Part shown: one piece after another, positions 19,771-43,223 of the stretch
Layout of the letters: every line of letters starts with the position of its first letter
Position numbering within the stretch: the stretch's first letter is position 1
Assembly: GCF_902713615.1 (NCBI RefSeq)
Contig: NC_052172.1
Location: 16,339,327-16,403,326 of the forward strand
From: Scyliorhinus canicula
Taxonomy: Eukaryota
Direction of reading: 5' to 3'
DNA length: 64,000 nucleotides
Notes under the pieces: generated by a model
What the model saw: only the letters and a program-made list of their open reading frames with translations
What the model was told of the DNA's origin: nothing
Databases searched by the model: none
Program-made: the position numbers and the translations under genes

Positions 19771-20509
19771 TGAAATGAAATGAAAATTGCTTATTGTCAC
19801 AAGTAGGCTTCAATGAAGTTACTGTGAAAAGCCCCTAGTCGCCACATTCCGGCGCCTGTCCGGGGAGGCTGGTACTTCCATTGGCTTTGGCCGTGGGCTG
19901 ACGGAATGGGCACCGCCCTGTCCGCGGTTCAGTGCGTGGCAGGGTTACTCTTGGGTCTGGGTGAAACAGTCAGACGAGGTGGCTCTGTGCAAGCGAGCCC
20001 CGTGGATATTTAAGGCAATACATTGTTTACTGCTTTTCCCTTCCTGCAGCCCCCGCGCCCCACCTCCCTCTCCCAACACACACACACACACAAAACTGCA
20101 CAGTGCAACTTCAGCAGACGTGCAGTCTGCTCTGCAGATTTATGTGCGAATGCAACTCATTGCACATGAATCTCGCTGTCTTGTTTTTGATTCTGCATTC
20201 ATTCCGTGAAAAAATGCAAGAAAACAAGGCACTTCTATTCAATTTAATAACGTATTAGTTTGGCACTTATGTCAGGGGCTTGGGGAGGTGTGTAGAGAGA
20301 GAGGGTGCAGAATTATCTGTCTGTCAACCTGTCATCTGTCTAGTATCCAGGGACTAGATGATACAACAAACTGGGTTTTAAAATTAAAATACTCTTGTGC
20401 ACACACACACACCCCCTTGTTATTTCAGTGCCAGAACCCCTCCCTTCTCCACCTTTAATGACTTGTGGTGGAGAACTGTTTAAAAAGTGCTTGCAGCTGG
20501 AGGGCAGCC

Positions 20510-20983
20510 ATGGAGAGAGTCACTCACAAACGCCCTCCTGCAGACCAGGAGTTCGATCTATGGAAGGACTACTTGCAGCTGTCGATGAGGGTCGAGGAGA
20601 TCTGGCGGCCTGGCAGCGGCGGGCAGGAGCACGGCCGGGTCAGCCCGCCCGGCGAAGGTGCCTTCCGGCCGCTGGTGGTGGAGGAGAGGGACCCCTCCTC
20701 GGACGGGAGCAGCGCGGGGCTGGAGCAGCTGGCCAGGAAGGCGAGCGGCATCTGCACCTTCTGCAAGCACAACGGGGAGTCGCGCAAGGTGTACTCCTCG
20801 CACACGCTGAAGGCGGAGGGCGGGAGGGTGCTGTGCCCCATCCTGCGCAACTACGTCTGCCCGCTCTGCCGGGCCACGGGCGATGGCGCCCACACCCTGA
20901 AATACTGCGGCTTCAACCCGGAGAAGCAGTCTCTGTACCGTAGCAACGGGCGCAACTCAGTGGGCAAGAAGCCAAGGCGCTAA
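20510..20983 (+). CDS. nanos2: Nanos homolog 2 (157 aa, single coding exon)
   Basis: Kozak gcagccATGG; NOT1-interacting motif FDLWKDYLQLS; two CCHC fingers (CTFCKHNGE..SHTLK..CPILRNYVCPLCRATGDGAHTLKYC); NANOS2-type C-terminus QSLYRSNGRNSVGKKPRR. Confidence 0.93.
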   Translation: MERVTHKRPPADQEFDLWKDYLQLSMRVEEIWRPGSGGQEHGRVSPPGEGAFRPLVVEERDPSSDGSSAGLEQLARKASGICTFCKHNGESRKVYSSHTLKAEGGRVLCPILRNYVCPLCRATGDGAHTLKYCGFNPEKQSLYRSNGRNSVGKKPRR

Positions 20984-24030: not shown

Positions 24031-24499
24031 TGTTTTAAAAAAAATTTAGAGTACTCAATTTTTTTTCCAATTAAGGGGCAATTTAGCCTGGCCAATCCAT
24101 CTACCCTGCACATCTTTGGGTTGTGGGGGCGAAACCCACGCAGACACGGGGAGAATGTGCAAACTCCAAACGGACATTGACCCAGAGCCGGGATCGAACC
24201 TGGGACCTCAGCACCTGGAGTATTGTGTTCAGTTTTGGTCTCCTTACTTGAGAAAGGACGTACTGGCACTGGAGGGTGTGCAGAGGAGATTCACTAGGTT
24301 AATCCCAGAGTTGAAGGGGTTGGATTATGAGGAGAGGTTGAGTAGACTGGGACTGTACTCGTTGGAATTTAGAAGGATGAGGGGGGGACCTTATAGAAAC
24401 ATTTAAAATTATGAAGGGAATAGATAGGATAGATGCAGGCAGGTTGTTTCCACTGGCGGGTGAAAGCAGAACTAGGGGACATAGCCTCAAAATAAGGTA

Positions 24500-31090: not shown

Positions 31091-32940
31091 GTGGGCCTTG
31101 TTAGGGTGCTCTTTCAGAATGTCGGACAAGAACGCCGCGTATAATGAAAATGAAAATGAAAATCGCTTATTGTCACGAGTAGGCTTCAATTAAGTTACTG
31201 TGAAAAGCCCCTAGTCGCCACATTCCGGCACCTGTCCGGGGAGGCTGGTACGGGAATCGAACCGTGCTGCTGGCCTGCTTTAAAAGCCAGCGATTTAGCC
31301 TGGTGAGCTACTCCACTGACTTTGGGTGAGAATCCTGGCCTGGATTGGCCATGCTAAATTTTTTTTAATTTAAAAAAAAAATAAATTTAGAGTACCCAAT
31401 TAATTTTTTCCAATTAAGGGGCAATTTAGCGTGGCCAATCCACCTACTCTGCACATCTTTTGGGTTGTGGGGGTGAAACCCACGCAAACACGGGGAGAAT
31501 GTGCAAACTCCACACAGACAGTGACCCAGAGCCGGGATCGAACCTAGGACCTCGGCGCTGTGAGGCAACAGGGCTAACCCACTGCACCACAGTGCTGCCC
31601 TGGCCATGCTAAATTGCCCATAGTGTCCAAAAAGGTTAAGTGGCATTACTGGGTTACGGGAATAGGATGGAGGTATGGGCTTGAGTAGGGTGCTCTTTCC
31701 AAGGGCCAGTGCACTCGATGGGCCCCTTCTGCACTGAAGGGATTCTATGATTATGAACCCCAGTCTATCCAATCCTCCCTCGTAACTGAAACTCGCAGGT
31801 CAGGCAACACCCTGCCCCCTTCGCAAGGCAGCACAGTGGTAACCACTGCTGCCAGGATTTGATTCCCGGCTTGGGTCACTGCGCGGAGTCTGCACGTTCT
31901 CCCCGTGTCTGCGTGGGTTTCCTCCGGGTGCTCCGGTTTCCTCCTACAACTCCGGGAAGATGTGCTTGTTAGGTGAATTGGCCATTCTGAATTCTCCCTC
32001 CATGTATCCGAACAGGCGGCGGAATGTGTCGACTAGGGGCTTTTTACAGTAACTTAATTGCAGTGCTAATAAAGATTAATATGGGACAGCATGGTGGCAC
32101 AGTGGTTAGCACTGCTGCCTCACGGCACCGAGGTCCCAGGTTCGATCCCGGTTCTGGGTCACTGTCAGTGTGGAGTTTGCACATTCTCCCCGTGTCTGTG
32201 TGGGTTTCGCCCCCACAACCCAAAGATGTGCAGGCTAGGTGGATTGGCCACACTAAATTGCCCCTTAATTGGAAAACATGAATTGGGTCCTCTAAATTTA
32301 TTTTTAAAAAAATTTAGCGTGGCCAATCCACCTAACTCGCACACCTTTGAGTTGTGGGTGTGAGACCCACGCAGTCATGGGGAGAATATGCAAATTCCAC
32401 ATGGACAGTGACCCGGGGCCGGGATTGAACCCGAGTCCTCAGCGCTGTGGGCAGCAGTGCTAACCACTGCATCACCGTGCCGCCCCTTGGCCAATGGTTT
32501 ATGTATATCTCAAATGCGAGGCAGCACGGTGGCACAGTGGGTTAGCCCTGCTGCCTCATGGCGCCGAGGTCCCAGGTTCGATCCCGGCTCTGGGGTCACT
32601 GTCCGTGTGGAGTTTGCACATTCTCCCCGTGTCTGCGTGGGTTTCGCCCCCACAACCCAAAGATGTTCCCAAACCCAAAGGGGCTGGTTTAGCTCACTGG
32701 GCTAAATCGCTGGCTTTCAAAGCAGGCCTGCAGCACGGTTCGATTCCTGTACTAGCCTCCCCGAACAGGCACCGGAATGTGGCGACCAGGGGCTTTTCAC
32801 AGTCACTTCATTGAAGCCTACTCGTGACAATAAGCGATTTTCATTTCATTTCATGTGTAGGCTAGGTGGATTGGCCACGCTAAATTGCCTCTTAATTGGA
32901 AAAAATGAATTGGGTACTCTAAATTTAAAAAAAAAAATTT
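30822..32940. mobile_element. Dense nested SINE cluster (seven or more copies)
   Basis: Repeated HE1 cores and short (tttca)n-tailed SINEs on both strands. Confidence 0.85.
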
Positions 32941-33029
32941 ATATGATTAAGGGCTATCACATCCCTCCCAGAGTGTGGATTCCAGGGCTGGAAAGGTCAG
33001 CTCCAATGTTGGGGGAGCCAGTGTTTTGA

Positions 33030-33216
33030 GCAGAGAAACTACAACTCCCGGCGTGCAGCGGGCCGCGGCGGTGCGCACCGCGCATGTGCGGCCAGCCACC
33101 GGAAGTGCTTGGAGCGTTGGCCCGGGAGGGAGGCCTGGCTGAGCAGCTGTCACTCAGACTGTAGCAATTCACTCTGCAGCGGGAGAGCAGCAGAAAGCGG
33201 CGGAGGGCAGGTGAGT
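33030..33216 (+). promoter_or_regulatory. CpG promoter and non-coding exon 1 of the ZBTB1-like gene
   Basis: ZNF143-type aactacaactcccggcgtgc (33037-33056), NRF1-like gcgcatgtgcg, ETS ccggaagt (33099-33106), consensus donor CAG|GTGAGT at 33210/33211. Confidence 0.75.
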
Positions 33217-33479
33217 TCCCACCGGGGGGGGGGGGGGGGGGGGGTGAATCGGGGGTCGATGCAGGGTCCTCACGGGCGCCGGAGCCATCCGGTTTGAATG
33301 GAGCAGGTCGTGCAAAAAAAACCACACACACACACACACACAAAAACATCCCCACGTTTCCACACAAAAGCCTCGGCAGGAGGTCAGCGCGGACCCGAAC
33401 ATGCCGCGGCCCCGCCGTGCCATTGCACCCTTCTGGATGGGCCGATCGGTTGCTCTGCCCCACAAAAAGGGTATGGTGC

Positions 33480-33755
33480 AAGTGGGCAAAGGGGTGTGTG
33501 ACTGGGTACAACTGGGCAAAGGGGGGGGGTACGATTGGGCAAAGAGGGAGGGGGCAGGGTACGATTGGGTAAAGGAGGGGAGGAGCGGGGTACAAATGGG
33601 CAAAGGGGGCGGGAATGGGGTATAATTGGGCAAAGGGGAGGGAATGGGGTACAATTGGGCAAAGGGGGAGGGGGCAGGGTACGATTGGGCAAAGGGGGAG
33701 GGAATGGGGTACAATTGGGCAAAGAAGATGGGGAGCGGGGCTCAATTGGGCAAAT
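33480..33755. repeat. About 29-30 bp G-rich minisatellite in intron 1
   Basis: gggtac(a/g)attgggcaaagggggaggg repeated about 9 times. Confidence 0.85.
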
Positions 33756-35426
33756 AATCATAGAATCCCTATTGTACATTCGGTCCATCGGGTCTGAACC
33801 GGCTCTCTGAAAGAGCACCTTACCGCGACCCACTACCCTGCCCTATCCCTGTAATTCCACCTAACCACATCTTTGGACTGGATAATACTTGGTTGATTCC
33901 TATCGGTTAGTCAAGGAAGAGTGTTTTTTAAAAAAAAATTTAGATTAGCCAATTATTTTTTCCAATTAGGGGGCAATTTAGCGTGGCCAATCCACCTACT
34001 CTGCACATTTTTGGGTTGTGGGGGCGAAACCCACGCAGACACGGGGAGAATGTGCAAACTCCACACGGACAGTGACCCAGAGCCGGGATCGAACCTGGGA
34101 CCTCAGCGCCGTGAGGCGGTTGTGCTAACCACTAGGCCACCGTGCTGCCCTAAGGAAGAGTGTTTGACTGATATTGGTGGAGGGGGTTTGAAAGCAGGAA
34201 TATTTACTGGTCAAATCCCACGGTAGTTGGTGGAATCAGTTGATAAATCAGGAATATGAAGCGAGTCTCAGTAAGGGTGACCCTAAACCTGTCATTGAAT
34301 GTCGTAAAAACCCTTTGAGGGAAAGCAAGGAAATCTGCCGTCCTTACCCGGTCTGGCCTTCACGTGACTCAAGACCCACAGCGATGGGGTTGACTCTTAA
34401 CTGTCCCTCTGGAATGGCCGAGCGAGACACTCAGTTCAGGGGGATGGGGCGCACGCTGGGACAGCGATTAGCACTACTGCCTCACAGCGCCAGAGTCCTG
34501 GGCTCGATTCCCAGCTTGGGGTCACTGTGGAGTCTGCACGTTCTCCCTGTGTCTGCAGGGGTTGCCTCCGGGTGCTCCGGTTTCCTCCCACAGACCAAAC
34601 CCGTGCAGGTTAGGTGGGGTTGGCCGTTGTAAAATTGCCCCTTAGTGTTCCAAGGATGTGTAGGTTAGCAAAGAGAAAATGCTGGAAAATCTCAGCAGGT
34701 CTGACAGCATCTGTGGGGAGAGAAAAGAGCTGCCGTTGCGGGTCCAGATGAGCCTTTGTCAAAGCTGTGTAAGTCTGGTGGGGTTATGGGGATGGGAAGG
34801 GGGGTGCCCTTTCGGAGGGTGGGTGCACTCGATGGGCCGAATGGCCCCCTTCTGCAGTGTAGGGATTCTATGATTGTTGGCCGTGGTAGTGACATAAATA
34901 TTCCATGAAAGAAAACACTTTAAAAAAGCCTCCAAACCTGGCTTCTTGAACATCCCCCCCACAGTGTTCTTCGCTGAACTATAGGTGGGAAGGTCGTACA
35001 GGGATTTCTTAACCCTCTCCTGCTTCATAAAATACTCCATAAATCCTCTTCTTTTTAAATAAATTTAGAGTACCAAACCCACCTACCCTGCACATCTTTG
35101 GGTTGTGGGGGCGAAACCCACGCAGACACGGGGAGAATGTGCAAACTCCACACGGACAGTGACCAAGAGCCGGGATCGAACCTGGGACCTCAGCGCCGTG
35201 AGGCCGCAGTGCTAACCACTGCACCATCGTGCTGCCCTTACTCCATAAATCCTACTGGCTTCACCAAGCTTTTGGCCACCTGTCCTTGTACCTATTGTGT
35301 GGCTGATGTTAGATTTTTCCTCCGTGTTTTATATGTTTATAGAGTTCTTGCTCTCAGCTGGAAGTGTTTGTGTCGGACGTTGTTATTAACGGTGGGGTTT
35401 CTGGTCTGTTTTAGGTGACGGGCAGA

Positions 35427-37538
35427 ATGCAGACGTGCAGCCACAGCGAGCATGTGCTGCAGCAACTCTGCTCCCAACTGGAGTACGGCTTCCTGTGCGA
35501 CTGCTCCATTGCCGTGGGCGACGTCCACTTTCGGGCCCACCGGGTGGTGCTGGCGGCCTGCAGCTCGTACTTCCACAGACTCTTTGTCAACCAGCCGGAG
35601 GAGGCCTCACAGGTGGTGCTGAGCTCGCAGGCCGTCAGCCCTGACCACTTCGACCTAATCCTGCAGCTGATGTACACCGGCCGCCTGGACTCTTCGCCTT
35701 CCGACCCGGAGCGGTTCAGGGCCTCGCTCAGCTTCCTGAAACTTTACAATGCGGCTTTGTTTCCCGCCCCGGCGGCCGAGGCAGCGCCGAGGGAGAGGCA
35801 GAGCGAGGAGGGGGCTCCCCTCGCCTCCAGCGATAGCGACCCGCTCGTCCTTGGTGCCGGGCTGGACAAGGACCAATGTACGCCCGCCGCACCGCCGGTC
35901 AAGCAAAATGACCAGGCCCCGATATCCATCAAAGCCGAGACCCCGGAGGTTACGCAGGAATTACAAAAGCTACTGTGCCGCCACTGCGACTTGGCATTCG
36001 AGGAGCAGCAGGGCCTGAGTGAGCACCTTCAGAGCCACGCGGAGAAGCCGTGTCACTGCCCGCACTGTGGCCTGGCCTTTGACTGCACCCAACGGCTGCT
36101 GGAGCACGTCACCAGCTGCCTGCCCCCCAGGGAAGTGGAGGAAGACCCGAAGGCGGTGGAGGGTTGGAGCGTCGCCCCCGAGGTGAAGCGGGAAGCAGAG
36201 CTGGCCGAGAGGCCGGGGGGAGACAGCTGCTCCGAGAGCCAGGAGGCAGCAGGCAAGGACGCGGGGCCTCCTGGCCTGAAGTGGCCGAAGGTGGAAGACC
36301 CCGAGGAGGAGGAGCAGGCGCCCCTGGTTCTGGAACTCAGCGGCGTCACCGTGGTGAGAGTTGGCGGGGAGGAAGCGGGGGCCGCCTTGCCGCCCCCTCT
36401 CTTTGAGCAGGCCGAGGATTACGAGCTGGAGGAGGGCGAAGTGAGGTTCCCGGGCGATGACGACCTGGTGCTGGAGAACGCCCGGGAAGGCGGCTTCTTC
36501 AGCAGCTCCGACAGCAGCCTGGACGGCGACAGTGAGCTTTCGGAGCAGACCGAGCTGAGCGAAGACGAGGACACGCCGGGCAGCGAGGGGCCCAGGGCAC
36601 CACCAATGGCGTCCGCCGCCAGAGGCTTTCCTGACCACCACACCTGCAGTATCGTTGGCACGGAGGAGCGCAAGGTGTTGCGGCGGCGGGGGAAAGGGTG
36701 GCGCTGCCAGGCATGTGATGGCTGCCACCCCTCGGAGGATCAACCGATGAGCCAGCTGGGGGCGAGAAAGGCCGGTGGGAAGAAAAATGGCATAGCCACC
36801 CGCTCCTCTTCACGGCGCTGTGTACCAGAGTATCGTGGGTGCCATGGCAGCGGTCAGCAGCACAAGCGCCAGGACCCAGGTTTAGAAAGGATACAGTCTG
36901 TGGAGTGCCGGCTGGCCAAAGGGTCCAAGGCGCCAGCCAGCAGCAAGAAGGGGTCAGAAGGGGCGCCGGGCAAACCCGTCCGGGCGTCTCACTGCAAAAA
37001 GGGCGGCAAGGCTTCAGAGGGGAAGCAGCAACGCCATCTCGGCAAAACAGCGGCCGGCTCGAGGAAACAAAAACGATTGCGCAAACACTCCTGCGAGGTT
37101 TGTGGGAAAGGCTTCCTCAAGCGAGGCCACTTGACTCAACACTTGGCCGCCCACGGCAAGGAGAGGCGGTTCTTCTGCCAGGTGTGTGGGCAGGGGTACC
37201 CGCGGGAGCGCGAGCTGCGGCTCCACGTGGCCACGCACACCGGCACCGCCCGCTACGAGTGCCAGCTCTGCGGCCTGGGGAACGAGCGGAAACACAGGCA
37301 CCTCCGCCACATGACCTGCCACCTGACCCAGGGCCAGGCTCTGTGCCAGGTCTGCTTCGAGATTGTCCTCAGTGCGGCCGACCTGGAGCAACACCTCGAA
37401 AGCCACTTCTACCCCTGTGGGACGTGCGGTGAGAAGTTCAAGCTGAAGAAGGACATGGTGACGCATGGTACCAGCTGCTGGGTAAAGAGGTTGTTGGATT
37501 CTGAACTGGACACGTCTTCGGGTCATCCAAACAAATAA
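35427..37538 (+). CDS. ZBTB1-like: Zinc finger and BTB domain protein, ZBTB1-like (703 aa, single coding exon)
   Basis: Acceptor ttttag|G at 35414/35415 and ATG at 35427; BTB HVLQQL..EYGFLCDCSIAVGDVHFRAHRVVLAACSSYF..FDLILQLMY..LKLYN; C-terminal fingers (RERELRLH..ARYEC..GNERKHRHLRHM..CQVCF..LEQHLESHFYPCGTCGEKFKLKKDM) parallel ZBTB1. Confidence 0.92.
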   Translation: MQTCSHSEHVLQQLCSQLEYGFLCDCSIAVGDVHFRAHRVVLAACSSYFHRLFVNQPEEASQVVLSSQAVSPDHFDLILQLMYTGRLDSSPSDPERFRASLSFLKLYNAALFPAPAAEAAPRERQSEEGAPLASSDSDPLVLGAGLDKDQCTPAAPPVKQNDQAPISIKAETPEVTQELQKLLCRHCDLAFEEQQGLSEHLQSHAEKPCHCPHCGLAFDCTQRLLEHVTSCLPPREVEEDPKAVEGWSVAPEVKREAELAERPGGDSCSESQEAAGKDAGPPGLKWPKVEDPEEEEQAPLVLELSGVTVVRVGGEEAGAALPPPLFEQAEDYELEEGEVRFPGDDDLVLENAREGGFFSSSDSSLDGDSELSEQTELSEDEDTPGSEGPRAPPMASAARGFPDHHTCSIVGTEERKVLRRRGKGWRCQACDGCHPSEDQPMSQLGARKAGGKKNGIATRSSSRRCVPEYRGCHGSGQQHKRQDPGLERIQSVECRLAKGSKAPASSKKGSEGAPGKPVRASHCKKGGKASEGKQQRHLGKTAAGSRKQKRLRKHSCEVCGKGFLKRGHLTQHLAAHGKERRFFCQVCGQGYPRERELRLHVATHTGTARYECQLCGLGNERKHRHLRHMTCHLTQGQALCQVCFEIVLSAADLEQHLESHFYPCGTCGEKFKLKKDMVTHGTSCWVKRLLDSELDTSSGHPNK

Positions 37539-38570: not shown

Positions 38571-39489
38571 GGAAATATTTTAAAAATAAATTTAGAGTAC
38601 CCAATTCATTTTTCCAATTAAGGGGCAATTTAACGTGGCCAATCCACCTACTCTGCACATCTTTGGGTTGTGGGTGGGGGCGAAACCCACGCAAACACGG
38701 GGAGAATGTGCAAACTCCACACGGACGGTGACCCAGAGCCGGGATCGAACCCGGGACCTCAGCGCCTCGAGACTGCAGTGCTAACCCACTGCACCACCGT
38801 GCTGCCTCGAGCGGAAATGTTGAAGCCTTCAGCTGCGATCTGGCCTGCAGACTTGCTCAAGCTTGACCTTTCCAACCACAGTAACGCCCAGTTGCTTAGC
38901 CCTCCCTGTCGGTTCAGTAATACAACCTCAATCGGTCTCCCCCACATGGGGCTCATTACCCCTTGCACTGTCACGACGGCACCTGCTCAGTTAGAACCCA
39001 CCATTACCAGCTATAGCTTGACTGACAATGCAGCTTCCTCCTACTGTTGCACGTCTTGTCCCAGCCCTGTTAGTGAATATATCTCAACCGATGTTATTCC
39101 ATCTCCCTCATACTTAGTAGGGTGGCACAGTGGTTAGCACTGCCGCCTCACAGCTCCAGGGACCCAGGTTCGATTCCAGCCTCGGTTTACTGTCTGTGTG
39201 AAGTTTGCACTTTCTCCCCGTGTCTGCGTGGGTTTCCTCCGGGTGCTCCGGTTTCTTCCCACGGTCCAAAGATGTGCGGGTTAGGTGGATTGGCCGTGAT
39301 AAATTGCCTTAGTGTCCAAAAGATTAGACTGGGTTATGGGGATGGCTAAAGTAGGGGGTGCTCTTTCCAAGGGCCAGTGCAGACTCAATGGGCCGAATAG
39401 CCACATTCTGCGCTGTGGGGATTTTATGATAACCTCTCCCCCTAACGTCCTGTTTTACAGATTTGTATCCGTACCATCATTAATCCAGC

Positions 39490-42634: not shown

Positions 42635-43223
42635 TTAATGTTTATCTTTTTTCTTCTTTTTCTTCTTGTGACCCACCTCCCAGGGCACAGTCTGTGGGAT
42701 CTCGGCCTCTTTGTGTTTTCTCCTTTTCTTCTCCCGCTTTCTGTGTCCGAGCTCCACCGATCCGGTGTCTGAGTGTTCGAAGGCAGCTTCTTCCTGCTCT
42801 GGCTCGTGCCCGCTGACCGCCACCGTATTCGCCCCCTTCCTCCTCTTGGCCAGGGGCTCCCCCTGGTCACCGAGCTCCGGCGCCACGGCCGAGTCGCCGC
42901 GGCGTTTCCGTGGCAGCCGCCAGGGCACGGCCGCGCCGAAAGGCTGGAACCTCAGCTTCAAGCCCGGCGGGATGCTGGGCGCCGGGCTGACGGGGATGGA
43001 GCGCAGCCCCTCGCTCCCGGACGGATCCTCCCAGCTCTCTCCGATGGTGATGCACCCGGCAAACGGTGGACAGCTCTCGCCGTGGCCTTCCTTCTCCAGG
43101 GGGAGGACCAGACTGACCCCTTCTGCTCCGCCGGACGTGCCAAACACGTTGTACAGTTTGTCCCTGTATGTCTTTGACTTGAGTGTCTGAAAACCGACCA
43201 ACGGGATCTTCCTTCCGGAGAAA
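42635..43223 (-). CDS. polr1g: RNA polymerase I subunit G (PAF49/CD3EAP/RPA34), coding exon 3
   Basis: Acceptor ttttctatttcag|T; FSGRKIPLVGFQTLK...PPFAGCITIGE...PPGLKLRFQPFG RPA34 domain; Lys-rich tail ending in TAA; frame agrees with exon 2. Confidence 0.9.

Follow-up and report, generated by a model that had tools for sequence, protein, structure and literature searches.

The closest known relative of the gene analyzed here is ZBTB1, which is reported to be a potent repressor with eight zinc fingers, whose repression and co-localization with SMRT depend on SUMOylation (PMC3260866). We examined a 64-kb stretch of the genome of the catshark Scyliorhinus canicula (contig NC_052172.1, positions 16,339,327 to 16,403,326 of the forward strand), referred to below as ‘the window’, which means the whole stretch and provides all positions given in this text. 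It contains a ZBTB1-like gene that we call Z1L. A prediction made earlier from the sequence (hereafter, the original prediction) had proposed this gene as a sister of ZBTB1 retained in sharks. We consider it probable that Z1L is a functional BTB-zinc-finger factor with a single coding exon, an ancient sister of ZBTB1 that presumably goes back to the early vertebrate whole-genome duplications (WGDs).

Z1L occupies the longest open reading frame (ORF) of the window, at 35415-37538 on the plus strand; the runner-up reaches only 262 residues. The first in-frame ATG, at 35427, opens an intact frame of 703 residues, and the start of the protein (MQ..SHS.HVLQQL) is kept among orthologues. The original prediction of an intact 703-residue ORF with a ZBTB1-type BTB domain and C-terminal fingers is borne out by the Pfam match to BTB and by a count of seven fingers. 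The coding exon and the parts of its product are listed below, with the confidence of the structure prediction given as the predicted local distance difference test (pLDDT).

35427..37538, plus strand: single coding exon of Z1L, 703 codons and a stop; 88% identity to the Scyliorhinus torazame protein (P0002), with orthologues in at least 15 elasmobranch species
35475..35747, plus strand: BTB/POZ domain, residues 17-107; Pfam PF00651, E = 6.5e-23; AlphaFold2 pLDDT 75-93; 77% identity to ray orthologues
35970..36119, plus strand: central finger pair, residues 182-231, the second being a C2HC finger that matches the ZBTB1 finger ‘CDCCGFVFSCEKLLNEHALTC’; pLDDT 81-90
36282..36362, plus strand: SUMO-acceptor-like ‘PKVEDPEE’ followed by a hydrophobic ‘VTVVRV’ strand, residues 286-312, common with ZBTB1 by sequence collinearity
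36411..36479, plus strand: acidic linear motif AEDYELEEGEVRFPGDDDLVLEN, 23 residues (329-351), 84-96% identical from sharks to rays, with flanking linkers at 13-25%
37086..37478, plus strand: five terminal zinc fingers, residues 554-684, the last being C2HC; pLDDT 72-94; a one-for-one match to the last five ZBTB1 fingers

With an N-terminal BTB domain and C-terminal C2H2 fingers, Z1L is, by its sequence, a transcription factor of the BTB-zinc-finger (ZBTB/POK) type. The BTB domain matches BTB structures in the PDB, and the C-terminal part matches Pfam zf-C2H2 families. A regular-expression motif scan placed the seven fingers at residues 184, 211, 556, 584, 612, 640, and 664, of which the finger at 211 and the last one are C2HC. 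In an AlphaFold2 prediction based on an alignment of 22 clade members, the model is confident for the BTB domain, for the central pair, and for the five terminal fingers (pLDDT 72-94), with the fingers modeled as beta-beta-alpha units; what connects these parts is predicted to be disordered, including the acidic motif. Conservation between sharks and rays follows these modules, with identities of 77–93% in the BTB domain, 84–96% in the acidic motif, 41–91% in the terminal fingers, and 13–25% in the linkers. This modular pattern, together with frames that are intact in every sampled species, argues for purifying selection on Z1L.

Z1L of skates and rays (P0011-P0014) lacks terminal fingers one and two as well as the SUMO-acceptor-like module, whereas its BTB domain, its acidic motif, and its last three fingers are retained. 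The coelacanth (Latimeria, P0313) and lungfish (Protopterus, P0173) models stop ahead of the five terminal fingers, which means that the models are truncated or that the DNA-binding array was lost in both lineages. The gene range in lungfish is ~146 kb, and a look at this locus showed no neighboring genes.

We placed Z1L in a maximum-likelihood tree of 52 proteins (634 columns, site-heterogeneous model) rooted with ZBTB17, ZBTB24, and ZBTB18.2. The ZBTB1 clade (support 100/99) unites cartilaginous fishes, chimaera included, with bony vertebrates, and Z1L falls outside it. The Z1L clade (98/92) splits into elasmobranchs (100/99) and bony fishes (95/83); within the latter, coelacanth groups with lungfish (100/98), next to the ray-finned fishes (100/99). 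Both clades roughly match the species tree. They are sisters with a support of 84/75, and ZBTB2/ZBTB25 lie outside the pair (100/100). Thus, Z1L is placed as a sister rather than an orthologue of ZBTB1, as had been proposed, and a translocated ZBTB1 orthologue is excluded by its position outside a clade that contains the ZBTB1 of cartilaginous fishes and by the presence of both genes in other elasmobranchs.

Because several branches are long, the alternatives were tested directly with the approximately unbiased (AU) test. Forcing cartilaginous-fish ZBTB1 and elasmobranch Z1L together was rejected (delta lnL, the log-likelihood difference, of 69; p = 3.8e-8), as was forcing bony-fish ZBTB1 and bony-fish Z1L together (delta lnL 77; p = 5.6e-5). 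In a tree without the bony-fish Z1L rows, shark Z1L is still sister to all ZBTB1, with a Shimodaira–Hasegawa-like approximate likelihood ratio test (SH-aLRT) value of 96. Similarly, a tree of the BTB domain alone recovered both clades (93 and 91), and in it a fragment from the chimaera Callorhinchus falls in the Z1L clade on a long branch. Since each clade holds both lineages, and given the AU tests, the ZBTB1/Z1L duplication predates the last common ancestor of living jawed vertebrates, i.e., it took place before the split between cartilaginous and bony fishes. No ZBTB1-type sequence from cyclostomes or invertebrates (amphioxus, tunicate) was found in our searches, and the only bound on the age of the event is therefore that it precedes the jawed-vertebrate crown.

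The proteins closest to catshark Z1L form a set confined to elasmobranchs, followed by true ZBTB1 at about one third of the score. Identity to the catshark protein is 88% in Scyliorhinus torazame, 61–64% in Carcharodon, Heterodontus, and Mustelus, 47–51% in Heptranchias, Stegostoma, and Chiloscyllium, and 36–52% over the aligned part in sawfish, skates, and rays. NCBI labels most elasmobranch members ‘ZBTB1-like’, and database labels are inconsistent overall (‘ZBTB1-like’, ‘ZBTB18-like’, ‘HIC1-like’, ‘uncharacterized’). With the ZBTB1 of the sawshark Pristiophorus as the query, an ordinary ZBTB1 was found in sharks, rays, skates, and the chimaera Callorhinchus. At least seven elasmobranchs carry both genes (Chiloscyllium, Rhincodon, Pristis, Mobula, Rhinoraja, Leucoraja, and Pristiophorus), and in Mobula and the whale shark Rhincodon, for which contig sizes are recorded, the two are on different chromosome-scale contigs.

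The gene is not restricted to cartilaginous fishes. When the BTB domain by itself was used in an exhaustive HMMER search, further proteins appeared whose BTB domain is nearer to the one in the window than the BTB domain of ZBTB1 is, and cluster look-ups assigned them to coelacanth, lungfish, bichir, reedfish, sturgeons, paddlefish, gar, and one teleost, the halosaur Aldrovandia; Callorhinchus contributed a 90-residue fragment. Most of these bony-fish carriers also have a normal ZBTB1, both genes being present in Latimeria, Protopterus, Polypterus, Acipenser, and Aldrovandia. The original claim of retention in sharks therefore stands for sharks themselves and is too narrow as a description of the gene, which also occurs in rays, skates, and the bony fishes just named. 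By sequence, Z1L is a jawed-vertebrate gene; besides cartilaginous fishes, its carriers are coelacanth, lungfish, ray-finned fishes outside the teleosts, and, among teleosts, one or more early-branching species. It was not detected in tetrapods, cyclostomes, or other teleosts by the BTB HMMER search and a profile search, a result that carries the limits of those searches and does not prove absence; the predicted loss from mammals agrees with it. The name ‘ZBTB1-like’ appears in no paper of the literature searched, which fits the expectation that the gene is probably uncharacterized, and the same literature yielded nothing relevant on ZBTB1 as an ‘ohnolog’ or on six9/six7 synteny. One protein model from Polypterus senegalus (P0349) joins a CCDC61 coiled-coil segment to Z1L zinc fingers and is almost certainly an annotation fusion of two adjacent genes.

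The surroundings of Z1L differ from those of ZBTB1. As predicted, the gene lies between a nanos gene and polr1g:

20510..20983, plus strand: coding sequence of the upstream neighbor, a nanos gene, probably nanos2 (ORF 20465-20983); Pfam zf-nanos, E = 1.4e-25
42635..43201, minus strand: last coding exon of the downstream neighbor polr1g (RNA polymerase I subunit RPA34), convergent with Z1L; Pfam RNA_polI_A34, E = 6e-17

The assignment to nanos2 is marginal: the top Atlas cluster of the window protein, ‘Nanos homolog 2’, scores 0.97, with nanos3 and nanos1-like at 0.96. A ZBTB25-like partner, noted by the original prediction as lacking in the 33 kb upstream of the gene, is missing throughout, as tblastn with the BTB domains of ZBTB25, ZBTB2, ZBTB17, and ZBTB1 found no second BTB gene across the 64-kb window, all matches lying from 35427 on. 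A convergent RNA_polI_A34 gene follows Z1L in the catshark window, S. torazame, Carcharodon, and the ray Mobula; since it is found in both sharks and Mobula, this arrangement predates the shark–ray split. Gar and Aldrovandia have Z1L between an HMG-box gene (640–654 residues, minus strand) and a Peptidase_M28 gene, two exons of which, in gar, score higher against human QPCTL than against QPCT (112 vs. 99–104 bits and 44.9 vs. 41.5 bits). In Polypterus, Z1L adjoins CCDC61 and an HMG-box gene. Human POLR1G, NANOS2, and CCDC61 are located in one band, 19q13.32. QPCTL, FBXO46, BHMG1, and SIX5 are adjacent to each other in 19q13.32 (PMC10449981; also PMC4863877). By sequence, the fish neighbors of Z1L (polr1g, nanos, CCDC61, QPCTL-like, and HMG-box genes) match this human band, in line with the predicted 19q13-equivalent position.

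True ZBTB1, instead, has a 640-residue HSP70 gene downstream in Mobula and Chiloscyllium, which matches the order of ZBTB1 and HSPA2 on human 14q23.3, and in Pristis a ZBTB25-like model (P0184) is on the same contig as ZBTB1. The 14q and 19q13 segments share the paralogue pairs cited by the original prediction, namely, FOS/FOSB, HIF1A/HIF3A, RTN1/RTN2, and PPM1A/PPM1N. SIX4 (14q23.1) and SIX5 (19q13.32) are a recognized paralogue pair as well (PMC2211742). The sister relationship and the location in paralogous blocks make a WGD origin of the ZBTB1/Z1L pair rather likely. The duplication would most probably have occurred in the early vertebrate WGDs, with ZBTB1 remaining on the counterpart of human 14q23 and Z1L on the counterpart of 19q13.32; Z1L would have been lost later in tetrapods and most teleosts.

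Several observations weigh against this reconstruction. The node joining ZBTB1 and Z1L has moderate support (84/75), the Z1L clade contains several long branches, and on such branches the AU test has the same bias as its model. The demonstration of two genes comes from species other than S. canicula, and the searches returned no cyclostome or invertebrate sequence of the ZBTB1 type. The gar Peptidase_M28 gene prefers QPCTL to QPCT only modestly, and the 14q/19q13 paralogy draws on published gene positions (PMC2211742) and on the human gene map. Next to the QPCTL-like gene and Z1L, gar has a 282-residue homeobox gene (L002:18236-21638, minus strand) that we considered as SIX5 and rejected as such, its SIX domain being ~83% identical to human SIX1, which places it in the SIX1/2 class. 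Since the human block has only SIX5, this gene may be a further duplicate that mammals lost. Finally, the sterlet copy of Z1L is located between PAQR-type (HlyIII) and CEP85 genes (L003:1-21984), unlike the copies of gar, Aldrovandia, and bichir. As the sterlet protein nests within the ray-finned Z1L group, this position is probably a later lineage-specific move; a different paralogue, suggested by the PAQR/CEP85 neighbors, was rejected by full-length BLAST and by the tree.

Among the alternatives, the one that survives best, although we consider it unlikely, is an ancient small-scale duplication, segmental or dispersed, on the vertebrate stem, in which case the 19q13.32-like position would be coincidental or due to a later move. 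It is favored by the moderate sister node, by the mobility that the sterlet copy demonstrates, and by the solitary state of Z1L, which has no ZBTB25-like partner, whereas ZBTB1 is paired with ZBTB25, as in Pristis. Yet the neighbors of Z1L in three independent lineages lead back to a single small human block, 19q13.32, which carries paralogues of 14q genes (PMC2211742). Losing one member of a duplicated pair is, moreover, common after WGD.

Shark Z1L and the ‘ZBTB1-like’ gene of bony fishes could also be non-orthologous products of the second round of duplication, retained reciprocally on 19q13-like and 2p-like segments. Shark and bony-fish Z1L have no directly common neighbor, and the gar cyclase, only modestly nearer to QPCTL than to QPCT, would point the same way, human QPCT being on 2p. 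So would the SIX1/2-class neighbor in gar, as human SIX2 is on 2p (PMC2211742). This explanation is improbable in the face of the branching within the Z1L clade, which follows the species tree, of the 19q13.32-type neighbors of bony-fish Z1L (CCDC61 in Polypterus and the HMG-box gene of ~640–654 residues in gar and Aldrovandia), and of the coelacanth protein, which has part of the shark acidic motif.

Much less credible is a fast-evolving ZBTB1 duplicate or retrocopy of cartilaginous fishes, whose basal place in the tree would be a product of long-branch attraction. The intronless coding sequence and the fast linkers, with 88% identity between the two Scyliorhinus species, could be read in this way, but ZBTB1 itself has a single main coding exon, and a 5′ untranslated region (5′-UTR) intron is likely ahead of the Z1L ATG. 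The required topology is rejected (p = 3.8e-8), the tree from the BTB domain places the gene in the same way, the clade has bony-fish members, and the locus is conserved between sharks and rays. A recent retrocopy, which the original prediction had set beforehand as a result that would refute it, is thereby removed, and lineage-specific duplications in general, a shark retrocopy included, are excluded by the two AU tests (4e-8 and 6e-5). That the frame is decaying or non-functional has a negligible chance, for although Z1L is known from sequence alone and skates and rays lack two fingers and the psi-K-x-E module, the frame is intact in all sampled species, at a depth that spans the shark–ray split, with strongly modular conservation and predicted domains that fold well.

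If Z1L is a functional WGD sister of ZBTB1, its activity can be sketched from the modules that the two proteins, homologous over their entire length, have in common. Most likely, Z1L would act, like ZBTB1, as a dimeric, SUMO-regulated transcriptional repressor. The BTB domain would dimerize the protein, and the five terminal fingers would bind DNA sequences related to ZBTB1 targets. Predicted base-contact residues of these fingers are QGHE, RREL, RHxR, a variable set, and LKDT in Z1L, and QCHE, RRLL or RRQL, RHDR, a variable set, and LKDS in ZBTB1; this similarity makes related DNA targets likely, and a specificity different from that of ZBTB1, which we had expected at first, was dropped on the same grounds. 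In the middle of the protein, a psi-K-x-E-P-E-D sequence followed by VVxV reads PKVEDPEE...VTVVRV in catshark Z1L and LKLEPED...IKVVHV in coelacanth Z1L, and the same module is collinear in ZBTB1 (VKSEPED...ITVVQV in shark, IKMEPED...YNIIKV in chicken). Its psi-K-x-E part fits the SUMO-acceptor consensus and VVxV resembles a SUMO-interacting strand; the site and the adjacent hydrophobic strand may therefore couple repression to SUMO, as reported for ZBTB1.

The acidic motif has no counterpart in ZBTB1 and is partly present in coelacanth Z1L. Because it is located in predicted disorder, it behaves like a short linear motif of the partner-recruiting kind, and this Z1L-specific segment of the linker may recruit some partner; one might speculate that its DDDLVLE core resembles an acidic SUMO-interacting motif. 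A more ambitious scenario, which we put forward tentatively and regard as doubtful in its entirety, would make Z1L a true WGD sister and an unnamed jawed-vertebrate family lost independently in tetrapods and most teleosts, with a near-invariant acidic motif, kept in cartilaginous fishes, that recruits a partner not used by ZBTB1, and would have sharks split between two genes the roles that mammalian ZBTB1 fills alone, such as those in lymphoid development and replication-damage tolerance.

Upstream of the coding exon, two features suggest how the transcript may begin:

32751..33750, unstranded: CpG-rich block, candidate promoter or non-coding first exon; GC 0.60-0.64, CpG observed/expected 0.58-0.70
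35400..35414, plus strand: probable 3′ splice site (ctggtctgttttag), 13 nt ahead of the ATG, read from the sequence

A good 3′ splice site before the ATG and the CpG-rich block make a non-coding first exon near 33 kb plausible; the start of the gene in the original prediction, 33030, falls inside this block (~32750-33750). Three overlapping minus-strand ORFs at 32957-33833, within the same block, have repetitive proline-rich translations that suggest a simple or tandem repeat and not a gene. The window also contains many copies of a repeat resembling a short interspersed nuclear element (SINE), e.g., at 24116-24406, 33921-34226, 35085-35240, and 38670-38800, with the translation ‘...GGETHADTGRMCKLHTDSDPEPGSNLGPQR...’. 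One copy is within the presumed 5′ intron of Z1L, and the family is abundant at the ZBTB1 locus of Chiloscyllium (L001; 1398 tblastx hits).

The relevance of Z1L is mainly to comparative immunology and to gene loss following genome duplication. Cartilaginous fishes are the oldest living lineage with immunity based on antibodies and T-cell receptors. As a conserved sister gene is missing from mammals, one-to-one gene relationships cannot be taken for granted when the lymphoid regulators of sharks are compared with those of mammals. Z1L and ZBTB1 offer a natural test of how duplicated regulators divide up their functions and later lose them, the near-invariant acidic motif gives a concrete handle on a partner protein, and the orthology set assembled here would permit consistent naming of Z1L. 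It is not rare for mammals to have lost a gene that sharks and early-branching fishes retain, which makes the finding useful rather than startling.

Among solved structures, the BTB domain of Z1L best matches that of ZBTB17 (Miz-1), with the same fold and ~40% identity, but ZBTB17 is a distant family member with 13 fingers that served only as a tree root. It ranks first only because a ZBTB1 structure is apparently lacking, and the classification of Z1L makes no use of this rank. ZBTB2 and ZBTB25 have the next closest BTB domains (~46% identity) and are the outgroup to ZBTB1 and Z1L; unlike Z1L, they are set apart by a very long branch (100/100), and their finger arrays are different and shorter.

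ZBTB1 differs from Z1L in its occurrence in tetrapods, where the BTB HMMER and profile searches found no Z1L, and in having three middle fingers (around residues 440-531) that are missing from shark Z1L and of which ray-finned Z1L has two. Conversely, shark Z1L has an extra classical finger ahead of the central C2HC finger, and elasmobranch Z1L has the acidic motif. Z1L is thus separated from ZBTB1 orthologues by its clade, by a neighborhood of nanos and polr1g instead of HSP70 and ZBTB25, and by seven fingers instead of eight, the ZBTB1 set including the middle C2HC fingers. At the same time, it shares with ZBTB1 an N-terminal BTB domain of ~50–55% identity, a single coding exon, a length of ~700 residues, and the features of the ZBTB1 subfamily: the collinear central C2HC finger, the mid-protein psi-KxEPED...VVxV module, and the five collinear terminal fingers with similar predicted base contacts.

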